From sequence record MW384823.1: 64,000 bases of DNA. One strand, given 5' to 3'. The notes beneath the pieces are model-generated. The model did not search any database, had not been told where the DNA came from, and worked only from the letters and a program-made list of their open reading frames with translations. Positions 5,198-63,952 of the stretch are shown piece after piece (within the stretch, counting starts at the first letter, position 1; every line of letters starts with the position of its first letter). The translations under genes were made by a program, and so were the position numbers.

Positions 5198-5215
5198 AGA
5201 TATTATCTTGGTGAG
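5198..5215 (+). promoter_or_regulatory. Putative early (virion RNAP) promoter
   Basis: AGATATTATCTTGGTGAG. Near-identical intergenic copies at 13935, 46144 and 62107. Resembles the phiKZ early TATATTAC core. Confidence 0.65.
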
Positions 5216-56509: not shown

Positions 56510-58621
56510 ATGATATTACGTGAACGTGATTGGGGTTTCTATCCGGGCGCTTTGGCGGATGATACCACCAAGAACAAACACTTTATGTATTTCGCCGATA
56601 CCTTAAAAGGGCTCGGTGTAAAGCACTGGTATTTGCATCTTGCACTTCTCGACCCGGAACTGCAAGGTGTTGATCCGCACGATCCACACCTGACTGTTGA
56701 ACAACAGGCGCGTGTGATTGCAGAATGTGCACGTAACCCATGGTACTATATCCGTGAATGCCTGCGCGTTCCTGCGGATGGTACTGACGGCGTACCCTTT
56801 AAGATTGACCGCGGTAACTTTGCGATGTTTTGGATCTTCTTCAACAACATCGACGTGGCCATCGAATTCCTTCGTCAGCACGGTAAGACCGTAGGGATGT
56901 GTTCGCTCCTGAGTTGGCTGCTGCGTTTCCTTGAGAAGTCGCGTACGATTCTGGTCACCAAAGGGCCAGTCCTGCGTGAGGAAACTATCACCAAACTGAA
57001 AGAGCTGCGCAACTGCCTGCCGAAATACCTGTGGCCTATCCACCCGGATGACCCTGACAACAAAGAAGCCTTTGCGTGTATGGCGCAAGGTAACAAACTG
57101 ATTACTGCGATTGGTCAGAACGATGAGCAATCCGCAAACGGTGTGGGTCGTGGTTTAACCGCCGGTCGTCTGTTCTCGGATGAGGGCCCCTTCACCAACA
57201 ACATCCACATCATTCTTCCGGCCGCACTGGCATCCGGTACGGCTGCCCGTAACATCAACGAAGAATCCGGTGTGCCTTACGGTAACGTGTTCGCAACAAC
57301 GCCTGGCGATCTGGCGACCCCAGAAGGTCAGTACATGTACGACCTGATGACCTCTGGGATTAACTGGGATGAGCGTTACATCGACATCCCAACCCGTCAG
57401 CAGCTGATTGACCTGATTCGACACAACTCCACGTCGAAGATGCCACGTATCATGTTTTACGCGAAGTTCAACCACCGTCAACTGGGTACCTCCGATGCGA
57501 AGCTCGCAGACATGATTGCGAACGCCACGGGTAGCCCAGACCAAATCCGCCGTGACTTCGGTGGTGAATGGACAACCGGTGGTTTCAACAAACCGTTCTC
57601 CGGTGACGATGCCCGTCGCATGAACGGCTCGCGTATGCGTGCCACGTACAAAGACATCAGTCCGGCCAACTACATCACCGATTGGTATTACAGCGAAATG
57701 GAGATGGCGACGAAACTCCACGACCGCCACATCATCGGGCTGGATACGTCGGAGGCGGTAGGTCGAGATGCGATTGCGATGTCGATTGTCAACTCGGTCA
57801 CTGCGGAGTATGCCGGGAAGATGACCGTGAACGAAACCAACGTTATCGGTTTTGCCATTCACTTGGCAGACTTCATGGAACGCTTCCCGAACACGGTACT
57901 TATCCTAGAACGTAAGTCCACGGGTTCGTCGGTTGCCGATGCCATTATCCTGCAACTGCAATCGCGTGTGCGTGACTTGCACCGTCGTCTGTATGTCAGG
58001 ATAACGGATACCAACAGCCGTAACGACGATTTGTATAAGGAGTATGCTCGCGGACCGGCAGGTGGTAACGCTGAACGGTTCTGGGACAAATTCCGTAAAT
58101 ACATTGGCTTCACTACGGACGGTGATAAGCGTCGGAAATTATATGGTGAGGTCTTCACCATGGCTCTCCGTTTATCAGCACACTTGTTACGCAGTGGCGA
58201 ACTCATTGACCAAATCCTTGGTCTGGTAGAACGCAGTGGACGTATTGACCACCAGAAATCCGGTCACGATGACTTGGTCATCTCTTGGTTACTGGCAATG
58301 TGGCTGCTTTTGTTCGGTAAGAACCTGAACCACTATGGGATTACCAACAACCGGCTAATGATTCGAAATCGCAATATCCTTGTAGGTGGAGATGTTACTG
58401 GAGACGAGGACGCGATGGTTGAAGAGGAGGAGAAGCAACAGCAACTGATGGGTGAGATTGAAGAAGTGATGAAGCAAAGTGTGGGCGTGACGTGTCCTGT
58501 TCGCCAAATGACCTTGCGTAATCGCCTCCAGTCCCTTATCGCTCAACTTAACACTGATATGCGCAACGTCGCATCGATGGAAAGCTTGAAAGAGCTTATC
58601 CAACGCCAGAGGATGAAGTAA
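56510..58621 (+). CDS. terL: Terminase large subunit
   Basis: Walker A LRQHGKT, Walker B LFSDEG, coupling motif ATTP, and nuclease motifs IIGLDTSEAVGRD and GHDDLV. Confidence 0.93.
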   Translation: MILRERDWGFYPGALADDTTKNKHFMYFADTLKGLGVKHWYLHLALLDPELQGVDPHDPHLTVEQQARVIAECARNPWYYIRECLRVPADGTDGVPFKIDRGNFAMFWIFFNNIDVAIEFLRQHGKTVGMCSLLSWLLRFLEKSRTILVTKGPVLREETITKLKELRNCLPKYLWPIHPDDPDNKEAFACMAQGNKLITAIGQNDEQSANGVGRGLTAGRLFSDEGPFTNNIHIILPAALASGTAARNINEESGVPYGNVFATTPGDLATPEGQYMYDLMTSGINWDERYIDIPTRQQLIDLIRHNSTSKMPRIMFYAKFNHRQLGTSDAKLADMIANATGSPDQIRRDFGGEWTTGGFNKPFSGDDARRMNGSRMRATYKDISPANYITDWYYSEMEMATKLHDRHIIGLDTSEAVGRDAIAMSIVNSVTAEYAGKMTVNETNVIGFAIHLADFMERFPNTVLILERKSTGSSVADAIILQLQSRVRDLHRRLYVRITDTNSRNDDLYKEYARGPAGGNAERFWDKFRKYIGFTTDGDKRRKLYGEVFTMALRLSAHLLRSGELIDQILGLVERSGRIDHQKSGHDDLVISWLLAMWLLLFGKNLNHYGITNNRLMIRNRNILVGGDVTGDEDAMVEEEEKQQQLMGEIEEVMKQSVGVTCPVRQMTLRNRLQSLIAQLNTDMRNVASMESLKELIQRQRMK

Positions 58622-58848
58622 TGACTCAACTCTTTTATTTAGCGGTAGCAATCGTTTGGATCGCCATGTTTGTGTCCATACACCACATTCATGGCGTTGT
58701 TAAACAACATGCCATTCAGAACAATCTCTCCACGATGGTCTTGCTTCGATCGCAAGCCTTTGCGATTACCGGGATGATTGTACTGGGTGCCATCGCGACA
58801 TCAGGGATGCATTACGTTTATACACTACACCAACTCTCGGTTCTGTAA
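58621..58848 (+). CDS. Small membrane protein (2 predicted TM helices)
   Basis: TAATG coupling to terL; two hydrophobic stretches in 75 aa. Confidence 0.6.
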   Translation: MTQLFYLAVAIVWIAMFVSIHHIHGVVKQHAIQNNLSTMVLLRSQAFAITGMIVLGAIATSGMHYVYTLHQLSVL

Positions 58849-58865
58849 GTCCGTCTGCTGGCAAG

Positions 58866-58925
58866 ATAAAAAAGAATAGGCACCTACCCCCAAAAGGAGT
58901 AGGTGCCGTTCTTTTATTTTTTTTT
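58866..58925. terminator. Bidirectional intrinsic terminator (repeat family variant)
   Basis: GGCACCTAC...GTAGGTGCC (58879-58907) with A- and T-tracts, between convergent genes. Confidence 0.82.
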
Positions 58926-60303
58926 AGCTTGCGATAGCCCGCACGAGGAAATAGAGCAACAACGCGTTACGCACCGCCGCCAGTGCCGCGGTGTGTGTCA
59001 GGTGTGTCTCTTTCTTCACCAGTTTCTCTAAGCGGTCACGTAACGACAAGACGTATTCGTTGGTGGACTTCGAGGATTGGTAGAGGGCCCGCATTCGGTT
59101 CAACAGGAAGGCCACGTCTTTGAAGTTGATGCGGTTAGTCACAATCAAATCAAAGGCATGGGCCAATGCGTCGTTCATGATGCTCTCGACTTCACTGCGT
59201 TGTTTACCGAGCGGCAAAGAGGCGATGTAGAACAGCACAGTCTTCATGGCCACCGGGGAGGCTTTCGGTACCATCTCAAGGGCTACACGCGCCAACTCTT
59301 CTTTGTAGAAGTTGTTGATGTCGTACGACGAATCAATTAGCGTTTGTTTCGCGGTGTTCAGGGCAGTGACCTTGTCGCGGATAATCGACTCCCCGTCCAA
59401 ATCGATGCGGGATGATTGACTGAGCACACGCGCATTAGACCGGCGTACCGCATCCAGTACCGCGTAGTAGTCCTTCACCGTTTGTTTGGTACGGGTGTTC
59501 AAGTCGGTGATAAACCGGATGAGTAGATCGGGGTGGTTAAACGCTTTGACTTCGTTGTAATGCGGACACTCCTTAGACACGAAGTATTCCGCACGATCGG
59601 TCATGTGCAGGCCCCAGTTCCCCATGCGACGAATGTCGAACTTCAACGACAGCATGGAGTAGGCCGCTTCGGCCGCAGGCAGGTCAACCGGTTTCGGGAA
59701 GAAGTGGTAATAGATACTCGAGTAGAATTTGAACTGGAGCAGCTTCACCAAATCCACGGCGGCTCCGTAAATCTCTTTGTCGGAGAATTTCGGGTACATA
59801 GCATGTATCATGTACGCAATGGTCAGGTTGAAGGTGTTACCCGCCACGGCCCAATCCGCATTGATGGTTTTGGTTTGGGCAATCTCGGCTTCCAGCAAGT
59901 CCTCGTCCACTTCGAGCACTTCATCGAACAGGCGATTACGGTCACTGTCGTAGAAACGGATGGTGTGCACTCCAAGAAGGTTGGAGCCGAACCACTCGAC
60001 ATTACCTTCGCGGTTGAACACGCCGGAAACGTACAGGCGAATTTTGGTGGCCAGACGTCGGTCAATGGTCACATTCTTAAAGACGCCGTCGAACGCCTTA
60101 CGAAGGGCTTCGGTCTTGACAGCCTCAGAGGCCACAAGCTGGCCAGCAGGGATATACCCGCCTAAACCGTAGTCGTAAATCAACCCGTTATCCAGAGGAA
60201 TGTCCCACTCATCTGGAATGCGATTACGAGACGATTCGCCGACCGCTAACTCTTTTCCGTCACGATAACAACCCGTCGTGAAGTCAAAAATAAGTTCGGA
60301 CAT
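58924..60303 (-). CDS. Conserved jumbo-phage protein, probable processed head protein
   Basis: AGAGGA RBS; 459 aa; candidate A-X-E site LVASE-A ends a ~60-aa N-terminal segment. Function is inference. Confidence 0.65.
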   Translation of the reverse strand: MSELIFDFTTGCYRDGKELAVGESSRNRIPDEWDIPLDNGLIYDYGLGGYIPAGQLVASEAVKTEALRKAFDGVFKNVTIDRRLATKIRLYVSGVFNREGNVEWFGSNLLGVHTIRFYDSDRNRLFDEVLEVDEDLLEAEIAQTKTINADWAVAGNTFNLTIAYMIHAMYPKFSDKEIYGAAVDLVKLLQFKFYSSIYYHFFPKPVDLPAAEAAYSMLSLKFDIRRMGNWGLHMTDRAEYFVSKECPHYNEVKAFNHPDLLIRFITDLNTRTKQTVKDYYAVLDAVRRSNARVLSQSSRIDLDGESIIRDKVTALNTAKQTLIDSSYDINNFYKEELARVALEMVPKASPVAMKTVLFYIASLPLGKQRSEVESIMNDALAHAFDLIVTNRINFKDVAFLLNRMRALYQSSKSTNEYVLSLRDRLEKLVKKETHLTHTAALAAVRNALLLYFLVRAIAS

Positions 60304-62818: not shown

Positions 62819-62824
62819 AAAACG

Positions 62825-62850
62825 GGGAGCTTCGGCTCCCTATTTTTTTT
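62825..62850 (+). terminator. Intrinsic terminator
   Basis: GGGAGC-TTCG-GCTCCC followed by TATTTTTTTT. Confidence 0.9.
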
Positions 62851-63071
62851 TGTTTTTTTGTTAACTGACGGCAATGTCCAGTTGAGAATTGTACACTTTT
62901 TAACCATGGGTCAAATTCGCTCTAAAAACGGTTCTGAGATGGTCGACCTCCTACCCAGTACACTTGGGTTCCTGATACCCCATTCGTGCAGCAGAGAATC
63001 GCACAGCGCGAAATTGGGCCGGTTGCAAATCGGTTTCCGGGGCAGGGGTCGGCTGCGCGACCGCCGATGCC

Positions 63072-63491
63072 GATCAAACGTTGGGGTGCGCTTGCGCGTT
63101 TTCAGGATCAAATTCAGGAATTCAGGGCAAACGAATCTTCGTGAGTTTGGCTGAATTTGGTTGTTTTTTAACCGCTTACTCTCCCCGGCCTTTAGCCGGG
63201 ATCGAGATCCGCTTAATTTAAAAATTTTTATTTTAAAAACAAAGACTTAGTTAGGATTATCCCCCCGATCCTGAACCCCCTCTGGGGTTCAGTTAAAAAG
63301 TCCTTTCATTATACGCGTGCACGCGCACGCCATTTCCTACAGGATCTTTTAAAAGAATTAATAATATTATTAAATATATATATCCCGTAGGGATAATATT
63401 AATAATTTAAATATATATATAAACCCTACGGGTTTTAAATAACTAACGCGCGTGATCCTTATTACGAGATCTAATCCGGGAAACGGGGATC
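63072..63491. other. Non-coding, GATC-rich, palindromic AT-rich element (candidate replication origin or cis-acting site)
   Basis: 9 GATC in 420 bp, several perfect palindromes and a duplicated TAAATATATATAT+hairpin module. Confidence 0.45.
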
Positions 63492-63524
63492 GGGGGAAAG
63501 TCGAATTACAAGTTTTCCCAGTTC

Positions 63525-63952
63525 TATGCACGACGAACCAAACGCTTGCCCGAATCATCCTCGGGCCTTTTTCGAGAATCCACGATGCGGGTTCTGGACA
63601 AAGCCAGCGGGACAGCCTAACACTTCCCAACGCGTTTCAGGTTCTGGTCAGAGACTCGGTGGTCGCCACCGACGAGACCGGTACCGTGGTAGCCCCACGG
63701 GAGACTCACCGCTTTCGGGCCGTCACCCGATACGTCATCGACGAACTTACCGTCGGTCTGCTGTGAACTCTCCCTGGGGTGTGACCAGATTTCGAATTCG
63801 GCTTGCGGCCGATAACCGTACACGGTTTAGCCCCGTGTACACCGGAGAAGTCTCCAACGGAGGATGATCCAACCATCTTGGCGGCTCGGAAAGACGAGAG
63901 GGGGGTGCCCCCACGCTGCGAAGCGCTAGGGTGTCGCTGAATGTGATTTTTT
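63525..63952 (+). ncRNA. Candidate structured non-coding RNA (~430 nt)
   Basis: TATG at 63525, about a dozen consecutive hairpins, a terminal T6 and no credible ORF. The strand is inferred. Confidence 0.45.

Follow-up and report, generated by a model that had tools for sequence, protein, structure and literature searches.

A conserved GATC-rich intergenic element with an easily unwound AT core as a candidate replication origin of SPN3US-like jumbo phages

Introduction

Where does replication start inside the phage nucleus of phiKZ-related jumbo phages? The locus described here raises this question, as both oriC and P1 oriR are built of an AT-rich unwinding element beside clustered GATC sites. 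The original prediction, which proposed an oriC-like and possibly methylation-gated element, remarked that origins are poorly defined in such phages; the literature we searched defines none for this group, nor does it describe a pac site or a methylome for these phages.

Results

Locus and feature assignment

The window, i.e., the whole 64-kb stretch of DNA that was analysed, is the 3' terminal 64 kb of the Erwinia jumbo phage pEa_SNUABM_43 (Machinavirus, SPN3US-like). The genome (241,904 bp) is that of a phiKZ-related jumbo phage, as had been supposed. The element resides within a 1.18-kb gap without genes, the left border of which is formed by the intrinsic terminator of gene 279, kept in six out of six close relatives. 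The large terminase gene is located ~4.4 kb upstream of the element, and a ParB-like gene, annotated as such without Pfam support, 3.6 kb downstream. The following features were assigned in the gap (a dot denotes no strand):

62824..62852, +, intrinsic terminator of gene 279 (GGGGAGC-TTCG-GCTCCC followed by a T-run), left gap border
63060..63500,., conserved cis element in full, comprising the left arm, the AT core and the right GATC block
63071..63085,., block CGATCA.ACGTTGGG with GATC no. 1 (63072; ca. -260 relative to the anchor GATC)
63087..63098,., inverted repeat h1, GCGC/GCGC; in other genera CCGC/GCGG, GCAC/GTGC or ACGC/GCGT (co-variation)
63125..63152,., inverted repeat h2, CAAAC...GTTTG
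63184..63200,., inverted repeat h3, CCCGGC/GCCGGG, then the GATC pair 63200 and 63206
63213..63249,., conserved A/T tract TTAATTTAAAAATTTTTATTTTAAAAACAAAGACTTA, core TTTTAAAA.CA...ACTTA, single copy in the genome
63271..63292,., inverted repeat h4, CTGAACCCC/GGGGTTCAG, with GATC 63267 just before it
63310..63330,., alternating purine-pyrimidine run of 21 nt, the longest in the genome, containing the loop-less palindrome CGCGTGCACGCG; Z-DNA-prone
63333..63358,., near-invariant block TTTCCTACAGGATCTTTTAAAAGAAT with the anchor GATC (63343), at the left edge of the AT core
63345..63445,., AT core, candidate unwinding element, 84% A+T
63446..63491,., right block with the (CG)n-like palindrome ACGCGCGT, followed by the conserved GTGATCCTTATTACGAGATC and lastly by GGGGATCGGGG
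63490..63945, +, separate conserved module with a terminator-like hairpin (63548-63566), then CTTTTTCGAG

The neighbouring genes (277-279 and 1-2) belong to no Pfam family, their PHROGs matches are all of unknown function, and the ESM Atlas gave no usable lead; no recognisable small terminase or terminase-like family is present among them. The record ends ~500 bp from the element. Where records start is set by the SPN3US convention (PMC5690319), and this nearness is without meaning; the element is found mid-record in several database records, and is therefore not an end artefact. Several public records break within the element, with 37-63 bp missing there. The breakpoints are scattered (-162/-104, -3/+35, +33/+49, +41/+105 and +96) with bases missing or overlapping, which is typical of assembly failure at palindromes and extreme AT content and not of one terminus; the record ends, although clustered at the element, look like assembly artefacts and were not accepted as physical termini. 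Metagenomic contigs of relatives from public runs (at the contig level, uninformative on ends and transcription) cross the element without a break.

The GATC cluster

All nine GATC sites listed in the original prediction are present, i.e., at 63072, 63106, 63200, 63206, 63267, 63343, 63454, 63468 and 63488. The enrichment is real, yet its estimate from about 1.6 expected sites was too low, because GATC is depleted about threefold in this genome (415 sites, 1.72 per kb, observed/expected 0.33); the window holds 128 sites compared with 258 ± 15 in shuffles. Genome-wide, the nine sites in 420 bp constitute the maximum, and the runner-up has six. When 415 sites are placed uniformly over the genome, the probability of a maximum of nine or more is 3.5e-4, and under a first-order Markov model of the region 1.28 sites are expected, nine being reached in 0 of 20,000 simulations (P < 5e-5). 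Were GATC not depleted (~1250 sites), it would be common for such a genome to have nine sites clustered at some place (P = 0.74). What carries the signal is the contrast to the depleted background together with recurrence in relatives. The extended motif GGATC/GATCC occurs at 7 of the 9 sites, but its enrichment is marginal and weaker in Seoulvirus, for which reason no claim is drawn from it. The P1 hexamer TGATCA/G fits a single site, 63072, as TGATCG on the minus strand.

The AT core and the alternating tract

The proposed AT-rich core was confirmed, with 16.8% G+C at 63345-63445, as were the perfect palindromes CGCGTGCACGCG (63314-63325), TCTTTTAAAAGA (63345-63356) and TTAATAATATTATTAA (63358-63373). 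The core is the AT-richest and least stable 50-100-bp duplex of the 242-kb genome (dG -100.5 compared with a mean of -143.4, s.d. 6.2, i.e., ~7 s.d.), and the AT-richest 60, 100 and 200 bp of the genome are located at this locus. Two further palindromes within it, TATCCCGTAGGGATA (63381-63395) and AACCCTACGGGTT (63422-63434), both co-vary. The alternating run spans 15-24 nt in relatives, where the property is kept while the sequence differs. Four genome-wide extremes, i.e., GATC density, AT content, duplex instability and the alternating purine-pyrimidine run, coincide within ~420 bp. The CATTATACGCG... tract resembles the centre of the N15 telomere-resolution site; no protelomerase is annotated in the phage, and the sequence of the tract is not conserved.

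The left arm and its inverted repeats

The stems CCCGGC/GCCGGG (63184-63200) and CTGAACCCC/GGGGTTCAG (63271-63292) had been pointed out and are indeed formed by h3 and h4. Since short stems were not registered by RNAalifold or MAFFT, co-variation was assessed by per-genome folding and structure-registered counts. In other genera h2 reads GTAACCGACA/TGTCGGTTAC, GTAATTCGCA/TGCGAATTAC or GAGAGAC/GTCTCTC, and among seven lineages each of its seven innermost pairs shows two to three pair types, with one G.T. For h3 the alternatives are GCCAGC/GCTGGC, ATCCCC/GGGGAT or CCGGCC/GGCCGG, with Watson-Crick pairing in 30 of 30 pair cells, and for h4 they are CCTACCCC/GGGGTAGG, CCCGCC/GGCGGG or TTGCTAACC/GGTTAGCAA. 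Altogether, five inverted repeats co-vary between genera, with almost exclusively Watson-Crick pairs and with no consistent strand bias, and there is consequently no evidence that the hairpins act as RNA. They are not followed by T-runs. In three genera the left arm folds better than its shuffles (z = -3.4, -6.3 and -5.3). The three TTCAGG copies at 63101-63126 exist as described; they are not conserved even among close relatives and are probably incidental.

The right block and the adjoining module

The right block carries the GATC sites 63454, 63468 and 63488, with two to four sites at shifted positions in other genera. The adjoining module is possibly a structured non-coding RNA or leader. 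Support for this comes from compensatory changes, from two U.G pairs that can form on the plus strand only, from indels that shift the frame and from the loss of 137 nt in SNU6. The module contains hairpin-plus-T-run units on the plus strand; its folding z-scores are weak on both strands. A scan of the gap against Rfam 15 gave no family, merely two sub-threshold chance matches (E > 0.5), and a tRNA scan of the gap found none.

Conservation across genera

Eighteen genomes from four genera carry the element, always at the same place in the gene order, and E. coli-infecting relatives (EC001 and Lh1B) also have it. The anchor block TTTCCTACAGGATCTTTTAAAAGAAT occurs exactly once in each of the 18 genomes, while 33 anchor-motif matches in IMG/VR are chance matches with just one to four GATC each. 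Compared with Machina, the left arm is 92.5% and the core 98.5% identical, whereas genes 277, 278 and 279 reach 85%, 94% and 43%, respectively; by this measure, the gap element is better conserved than the flanking genes. The relatives have 7-11 GATC within ~430 bp vs 0.4-2 per kb in the flanks, and an AT core of 75-96% AT. Two GATC sites are invariant while the remaining ones move between genera, and GATC no. 1 is retained in 16 of 17 aligned genomes. GATC density is kept while sites move, just as hairpin potential is kept while stems change. The element has no second copy in the genome, and purifying selection on it is strong.

The cluster is conserved in 14 of 18 relatives. In the Caitlin subclade, which represents the sole such loss, the element and the Dam gene are kept and most GATC sites are gone, indicating that the cluster is dispensable for the core function there. 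Presence or absence of Dam was rejected as the cause of the weak Caitlin cluster, as Dam is found in all relatives.

A phage-encoded Dam methylase

The product of gene 117 matches PF02086 (4e-52) and scores above the TIGR00571 cutoff. It aligns over its full length with E. coli Dam (2G1P; 4e-59), including the DNA-contact and DPPY residues, which suggests an orthologue-like Dam with GATC specificity. The gene is present in all relatives and co-occurs with the element. The proposal of methylation gating is plausible given that the phage encodes its own Dam orthologue.

Initiator and promoter motifs

The DnaA-box pattern TTWTNCACA (box TTATNCACA) has 18 matches in the genome on either strand and none in the gap, and the element holds no conserved iterons or direct-repeat family. 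An early-promoter consensus was derived de novo (~24 copies, all on the plus strand), and a position weight matrix built from 21 of the sites scored at best 10.4 bits in the gap, compared with 34-54 bits at its source sites; it located three further plus-strand sites at 22-40 bits. The next copy of the motif lies ~7 kb downstream. Two other candidates were rejected as promoter classes, ATTTTTTAC as not recurrent and the A/T-tract motif as unique in the genome. A sigma-70 scan gave only weak matches, on the minus strand of the AT core, which are irrelevant since the phage uses its own polymerases. The suggested GC-skew analysis did not support an origin: cumulative skew tracks gene orientation and does not switch at the element. 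Because this makes it rise steadily along the record, a minimum at the record start is to be expected and carries no information.

Discussion

A tentative assignment as a replication origin

We tentatively assign the element as cis-acting DNA, not a gene, and as a replication origin with GATC sites marked by the phage Dam, a reading to which we give somewhat less than an even chance. At present no better candidate for a replication origin, or a packaging start, is at hand in these phages. We infer unwinding of the core, methylation of the GATC sites and initiation of replication at the element. In such a mechanism, the 100-bp AT core would be the site of duplex opening, and the strand-symmetric inverted repeats and the Z-DNA-prone tract would extrude as hairpins, thereby absorbing or stabilising the unwound supercoiled state. 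The single-stranded hairpins might provide landmarks for the phage replication machinery. The phage Dam would methylate the surrounding GATC sites, the state of which (un-, hemi- or fully methylated) would report whether and when the DNA has been replicated, and would gate or time initiation.

The claim of an oriC-like element holds in part. A conserved non-coding cis element with an easily unwound AT core and a GATC cluster is present; however, the lack of DnaA boxes, iterons, repeated P1-type hexamers and the early-promoter motif means that it is not oriC-like in the strict sense. As in enterobacterial oriC, the AT-rich unwinding element is bordered by and contains a dense GATC cluster, and methylation state may serve as a replication timer. 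The left edge of the core starts with GATCTTTT and resembles the GATCTnTTnTTTT 13-mer over its first eight positions, i.e., partially. Unlike oriC, the element has about half the GATC density; where oriC has initiator boxes, it is flanked by inverted repeats that co-vary and by a Z-prone tract. The methylase is encoded by the phage, and such phages are believed to replicate in a protein shell from which host factors such as SeqA are kept out. P1 oriR has an AT-rich region with several GATC sites within the origin, and the likeness extends to lambda ori and plasmid oriV; these have iterons and an adjacent initiator gene, neither of which is recognisable at the phage element.

Against the assignment as an origin stand the absence of DnaA boxes and conserved iterons, the loss of most GATC sites in the Caitlin subclade, and the lack of a recognisable initiator gene among the adjoining genes (277-279 and 1-2). 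In T4-like phages with UvsX, replication can proceed mostly through recombination, and a single strong origin may be absent. Moreover, nucleus-forming phages should keep host Dam and SeqA out, and the sequestration logic of oriC cannot therefore simply be transferred.

Alternative explanations

A GATC cluster can equally gate packaging, as in the P1 pac site, a 161-bp region with seven GATC-containing hexamers and Dam-dependent cleavage in a phage that has its own Dam (PMC10028697, PMC12707154). By analogy, the terminase would cut the element late, when its GATC sites are fully methylated, and headful packaging would follow. The clustered sites to the left and right of a central region fit such a site, as do the phage Dam and the large terminase gene ~4.4 kb upstream; headful packaging is assumed for SPN3US-like phages (PMC5690319), and many database records break within the element. 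The scatter of these breaks, however, resembles assembly failure and not one terminus, and the relatives' metagenomic contigs run through uninterrupted. P1 pac lies inside pacA and is built of TGATCA/G hexamers, whereas the present element spans ~440 bp, has the hexamer at one of nine sites, and is intergenic, outside any small-terminase gene and with none recognisable nearby. Its centre is a 100-bp core of 84-96% AT with palindromes, the least stable DNA of the genome, which is unusual for a pac site. On balance, a Dam-gated pac site is a serious but less likely alternative. Another proposal is that promoters or upstream elements for the non-virion RNA polymerase in the core and its flanks serve the rightward RNA and the HslV-tRNA genes, with the GATC sites switching them according to Dam methylation, as happens at the promoters of Mu mom, pap and IS10. 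With gene 279 closed by a strong terminator and the next early promoter ~7 kb away, gene 1, the tRNA genes and the right module need a promoter inside the gap. The hairpin/T-run units and U.G pairs of the right module on the plus strand are consistent with transcription, as is the presence of 57-58% of the SPN3US gap words in four transcriptomic runs, and middle and late promoters in these phages are poorly defined (PMC7598289). Known promoter motifs are nevertheless absent from the element, and the folding z-scores of the right module are weak on either strand. Without the early-promoter motif, and with hairpins that have no T-runs, the element is not simply a promoter or a terminator array. 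A promoter would also leave unexplained the five co-varying strand-symmetric repeats over 300 bp, the Z-prone tract and the GATC sites on both sides of the core; Mu mom, pap and IS10 have two to three GATC overlapping the binding site of one regulator beside a defined promoter, in contrast to 7-11 sites that extend over 430 bp to the left and right of a core of the unwinding type. Transcription control as the main role is likewise a serious but less likely alternative. T4 oriF/oriG and the T7 primary origin combine a promoter with a downstream unwinding element and R-loop priming, and transcription control is for this reason compatible with an origin. In common with these origins and the ColE1 pre-primer RNA system, the phage has its own RNA polymerases, RNase H and UvsX (a primase is unannotated), a unique A/T-tract motif ~100 bp upstream of the AT core, and a hairpin series upstream of the melting region; it differs in that a promoter was not found at the element and in that the hairpins lack a consistent strand bias.

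An architectural or topological role, i.e., as a supercoil sink, as a genome-organising, partition or anchoring site in the phage nucleus, or as the leading end in ejection, would involve no direct part in starting replication or packaging. The combination of cruciform-, Z- and melt-prone DNA, unique in the genome, and the ParB-like gene 3.6 kb downstream are in line with it, but neither a parS-like motif nor any other repeated motif for protein binding is present, Pfam lends no support to the annotation as ParB-like, and no specific prediction of this idea is borne out by the data; we regard it as very unlikely. Finally, that the element has no function, the cluster being due to chance in a junk spacer or an artefact arising from where the record was opened, could be argued from the frequency of nine-site clusters if GATC were not depleted and from the proximity to the record end. 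The comparative data effectively refute such a functionless origin of the cluster: the element is better conserved than the genes beside it, it is shared by four genera in which sites have turned over and stems have changed in a compensatory way, it is mid-record in several records, and both the scan statistic and the local-composition model (P = 3.5e-4 and P < 5e-5) speak against chance.

Implications

Returning to the assignment as an origin, a further-reaching claim is rather doubtful at present: that the element would be the first defined origin of a nucleus-forming (phiKZ-related) jumbo phage, free of protein boxes and composed of an extreme AT core, hairpins selected for their structure and a Z-DNA-prone tract, with its firing, or a combined origin/packaging switch, timed by the phage Dam inside a compartment that excludes host Dam and SeqA. 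On the practical side, the element breaks or truncates genome assemblies, which is why several public records lack 37-63 bp, and it marks a region to avoid or to include in phage engineering. For the question of where phiKZ-related jumbo phages start replication inside the phage nucleus, it offers a single, sharply bounded candidate of ~440 bp. Mutations could be aimed at the two GATC sites that are invariant, at the AT core or at the hairpins, with the phage Dam gene as a second target, and the element makes the start of replication or packaging, and any timing by methylation, directly testable.

A gene-free gap between gene 279 and gene 1

The sequence is identical to the final 64 kb of Erwinia phage pEa_SNUABM_43 (pEa43; MW384823.1, 241,904 bp, genus Machinavirus; window position = record position - 177,904), an SPN3US-like, phiKZ-related jumbo phage that encodes split multisubunit RNA polymerases, a phiKZ-like internal head protein, UvsX, RNase H and two DNA polymerase genes. 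Record gene 10 (L002:3643-3969) is annotated 'putative chromosome binding protein, ParB like'; Pfam support for it is absent at E <= 0.01, and its PHROG family is one of unknown function. The element described here, a ~440-bp non-coding segment (63060-63500), sits within 1,182 bp that hold no credible gene, and the genes flanking this gap matched no family with known function.

Landmarks of the gap
62818, end of gene 279
62824-62841, strong intrinsic terminator closing gene 279
63617-63823, - strand, small annotated ORF (gene 280), reading frame not conserved
directly past 64000, start of gene 1 of the circular record (HslV-like), followed by a tRNA cluster

ORF annotations within the gap vary among relatives and are interrupted by frameshifting indels (gene 280; Machina gp279, L006:3004-3417), so they probably do not represent genuine genes. 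Base 1 in SPN3US-like records is set by alignment to SPN3US, which makes the closeness of the element to the record end meaningless, and headful packaging in these phages is assumed from terminase homology only (PMC5690319).

GATC enrichment and genome-wide extremes

The original prediction had read 63072-63491 as an oriC-like GATC cluster serving as a replication origin, packaging start or PhuZ/nucleus attachment site. Its coordinates for GATC sites, palindromes, stems and repeats are all correct, and the enrichment is larger than was estimated because the genome strongly avoids GATC: the window holds 128 sites against 258 +/- 15 in dinucleotide shuffles, and the whole genome 415 (1.72 per kb; observed/expected 0.33 under a Markov model).

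Anatomy of the element
63071-63085, block CGATCA.ACGTTGGG
63087-63098, inverted repeat h1
63125-63152, inverted repeat h2
63184-63200, inverted repeat h3
63213-63249, conserved A/T tract occurring once in the genome
63271-63292, inverted repeat h4
63310-63330, alternating purine-pyrimidine tract with the loop-less palindrome CGCGTGCACGCG
63333-63358, near-invariant block TTTCCTACAGGATCTTTTAAAAGAAT
63345-63445, AT core with two internal palindromes
63446-63471, short (CG)n-type palindrome and conserved GTGATCCTTATTACGAGATC
63488, last GATC

The 420-bp window from 63070 is the genome maximum with nine sites, the next best having six. At least nine sites in a window arose in 0.035% of simulations with 415 sites placed uniformly; the region's own first-order Markov model expects 1.3 sites, and nine were never reached in 20,000 trials. 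Without GATC depletion, finding such a cluster in 242 kb would be no surprise (P = 0.74); what makes it significant is its contrast with a background poor in GATC, together with the comparative data, and we regard a chance cluster as highly improbable. The same ~420 bp contain the AT-richest 60-, 100- and 200-bp windows of the genome, its least stable duplex at lengths of 50 and 100 bp (-100.5 kcal/mol vs a genome mean of -143.4, sd 6.2) and its longest alternating purine-pyrimidine run (21 nt, 63310-63330). A second GATC-rich stretch, 18 sites in 2.4 kb (L009:7029-9429; record 57029-59429), lies outside the window within coding genes 69 (the phiKZ-like internal head protein) and 70.

Conservation across genera

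In a comparison of six close Machinavirus genomes, conservation of the gap exceeds that of the adjoining genes. Identity to Machina is 98.5% in the core block (63301-63500) and 92.5% in the left arm, compared with 85%, 94% and 43% for genes 277, 278 and 279, respectively. A sensitive search found 63302-63423 kept at ~78-84% identity, always unannotated, in three further genera.

Carriers of the 63302-63423 homologue
Seoulvirus: SPN3US, SPFM phages, SPAsTU
Erskinevirus: phiEaH2, Stratton, Asesino
Wellingtonvirus: Kwan, Wellington, SNU11

Every genome examined has, in the same syntenic place between gene 277-279 homologues and the HslV/tRNA-Trp block, a gene-free gap of ~1.1 to 1.8 kb. The anchor CAGGATC(T/A)TTT, whose GATC lies at 63343, occurs exactly once in 18 of 18 genomes (Kwan variant, CAGGGATCTTT). 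An exact-pattern scan of IMG/VR for the anchor returned seven true homologues, one of them a new 237-kb relative, together with 33 chance matches that served as negative controls.

Gene gain and loss concentrate at the right end of the gap: Machina, Parshik, pSal-SNUABM-04 and SNU10 have an insertion of one or two additional small genes at ~63945, and Kwan has an HNH endonuclease gene nearby. About half of the SPFM records (SPFM1, 5-10, 12, 14, 15, 20) match the SPFM4 element as 18-21 short pieces of 98-99.8% identity, as if differences were regularly spaced, which may be a sequence-quality or formatting fault of the records.

GATC turnover and the phage methylase

GATC counts from -280 to +150 around the anchor GATC
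pEa43: 9
SNU10, SNU6: 11
Machina, pSal04: 8
Parshik: 7
SPFM4: 8
SPAsTU: 11
SNU29: 8
phiEaH2, Stratton: 9
Asesino: 8
Kwan, SNU11: 7
Caitlin, ChrisDB, SNU4, SNU9: 2-4 in all

Flanking DNA has 0.4-2 GATC per kb. Two positions are essentially fixed, the anchor and CGATCA at ~-260, the latter present in 16 of 17 aligned genomes and absent in SNU11. The remaining sites shift by genus: a pair at -143/-137 in pEa43 is found at -68/-59 in Seoulvirus, and the right-hand group (+90 to +152) consists of two to four sites at shifted positions. The chance IMG/VR matches have one to four GATC, although their flanks are GATC-richer. That density is kept despite site turnover, in genomes otherwise purging GATC, argues for selection on GATC itself within the element.

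Gene 117 (record 98010-98831) encodes a D12-class N6-adenine methyltransferase (PF02086, E = 4e-52) that scores above the TIGR00571 'dam' cut-off (237 vs 115 bits). Its best solved relative is E. coli Dam, over the full length (E = 4e-59), followed by DpnM, both of which are GATC-specific. In the alignment it keeps the DPPY motif and counterparts of E. coli K9, Y119, N120, L122, R124 and P134, residues whose roles we take to be those in the published Dam-DNA structure. All SPN3US-like relatives carry the gene (49-100% identity), those of the Caitlin subclade (Caitlin, ChrisDB, SNU4, SNU9) among them. This subclade keeps the element, the AT core, both fixed GATC sites and the Dam gene, and has lost the GATC cluster; its alternating run is 7 nt (L013, L014, L018, L023), whereas the tract is conserved as a property, at 15-24 nt, in all other lineages. 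As a single evolutionary event, this joint loss is only suggestive.

Structure-selected repeats in the left arm

The five left-arm repeats (h1-h5) are five unrelated sequences within one genome, so that no one sequence-specific protein can bind them all. In other genera each is swapped for a different, perfectly complementary arm pair; for h2 these are ACAAAC/GTTTGT, GTAACCGACA/TGTCGGTTAC, GTAATTCGCA/TGCGAATTAC and GAGAGAC/GTCTCTC. When stems are registered by structure, every h2-h5 position shows two or three Watson-Crick pair types across lineages, with two G.T pairs among ~130 cells; by strand, G.T is in + excess in h1 and h2, in - excess in h3 and equal in h4 and h5. In three genera (z = -3.4, -6.3 and -5.3), the left arm folded as single-stranded DNA is more stable than every one of 200 dinucleotide shuffles, and none of the element's hairpins has a T-run directly behind it. 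Arm replacement, mixed G.T strands and fold stability together indicate that selection acts on structure, not sequence, and strand-symmetrically, a pattern no less suited to DNA inverted repeats, whether as cruciforms or as single-strand hairpins, than to RNA.

Known motifs and promoters

There are no DnaA boxes in the gap and no conserved iterons were found in the element; the TTCAGG triplet of the original prediction is lost already in a close relative. The P1 hexamer TGATCA/G is fitted by only one of the nine GATC sites. Rfam and tRNA searches of the gap were empty.

The phage early-promoter consensus, derived de novo, is roughly tttCAGATAnATATTAYCtnGGTGAg (longer version, nnnAAAnnnTnTCAGATAnATATTAYCTnGGTGAg). 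Its ~24 copies lie without exception on the + strand, most of them a short distance upstream of a gene; those in the window are at 5200, 13937, 46146, 60332 and 62109, with about 19 more in the rest of the genome. Scores are 34-54 bits at the 21 building sites and 22-40 at three further + strand sites; the best score in the gap is just 10.4 bits. The core resembles the phiKZ early-promoter core TATATTAC, and seven copies have in common a longer form, GATATATATTACCTAGGTGAGA, with a conserved leader.

Record ends inside the element

The element is an assembly breakpoint in public records. The SPN3US record opens 104 bp left of the anchor and closes at -162, with ~57 bp missing (L024/L025), and Proteus phage 7, SPFM16, SPFM2, SPFM17, JN03, Lh1B and EC001 independently end or begin inside the element, with varying offsets and different junction defects.

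Junctions
SPFM2 (L066): 17-bp overlap across the core palindrome
SPFM16 (L067): 63 bp missing
Proteus phage 7 (L068): ~37 bp missing

The record ends were rejected as evidence for a defined terminus, as scattered offsets and varied defects reflect assembler behaviour at palindromes and extreme AT. Contigs of environmental relatives cross the gap without interruption.

The neighbouring right module

A separate conserved unit, not part of the element, occupies 63490-63945.

Right-module features
hairpin with loop AATTACA
block containing TATG
63548-63566, terminator-like hairpin, then CTTTTTCGAG

Further hairpins are preserved through compensatory changes, including two U.G pairs workable only on the + strand. 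Close relatives differ by 1-nt indels, and SNU6 has a 137-nt deletion (63691-63827), which shows that the module is not coding; the Caitlin subclade carries ~270 nt extra with two additional hairpin-plus-T-run units. On either strand the folding z-scores are weak, and Rfam gave no match to the module, which may be a + strand non-coding RNA or the leader of the HslV-tRNA block. In each of four small transcriptomic RNA-Seq runs of a single study (X35-X38), 57-58% of sampled words of the SPN3US gap (L047:1-1185) are present.

Discussion

The element is unique, strongly constrained, non-coding DNA, and its selected properties are easy melting, hairpin/cruciform and Z-DNA potential, and dense target sites of a methylase encoded by the phage. 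Both oriC and P1 oriR are built around an AT-rich unwinding element accompanied by clustered GATC, and the element likewise pairs an AT-rich core with clustered GATC. The element lacks initiator boxes and has structure-selected hairpins, which points to a mode of site recognition different from that of initiator-box origins. Loading could be structure-specific, or initiation could be primed by transcription, as it is at T4 oriF/oriG or T7; the latter would be in keeping with a phage that encodes RNA polymerases and RNase H and has no annotated primase. On the shared design and the fit of these modes we rank first, tentatively, a replication origin with Dam-dependent timing.

In P1 the same ingredients have been shown able to gate packaging (PMC10028697, PMC12707154), and a pac site gated by Dam methylation is the corresponding reading here; the non-P1 context of the GATC sites, the extreme AT core and the artefactual record ends speak against it, and we consider it unlikely. 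Some form of transcription control is required, given that the downstream genes have no recognisable promoter, and such a role, to which we give a similarly low probability, would be compatible with a transcription-primed origin. An architectural role appears less likely still.

For SPN3US-like and other phiKZ-related phages, the searchable literature reports neither a mapped origin or pac site nor a methylome, and a description of this element was not found there. If the element is an origin or a pac site, it would be a Dam-marked cis site with an AT core and no protein boxes, made of structure-selected repeats and served by the phage's own Dam, in a phage whose replication is believed to take place within a nucleus-like shell.
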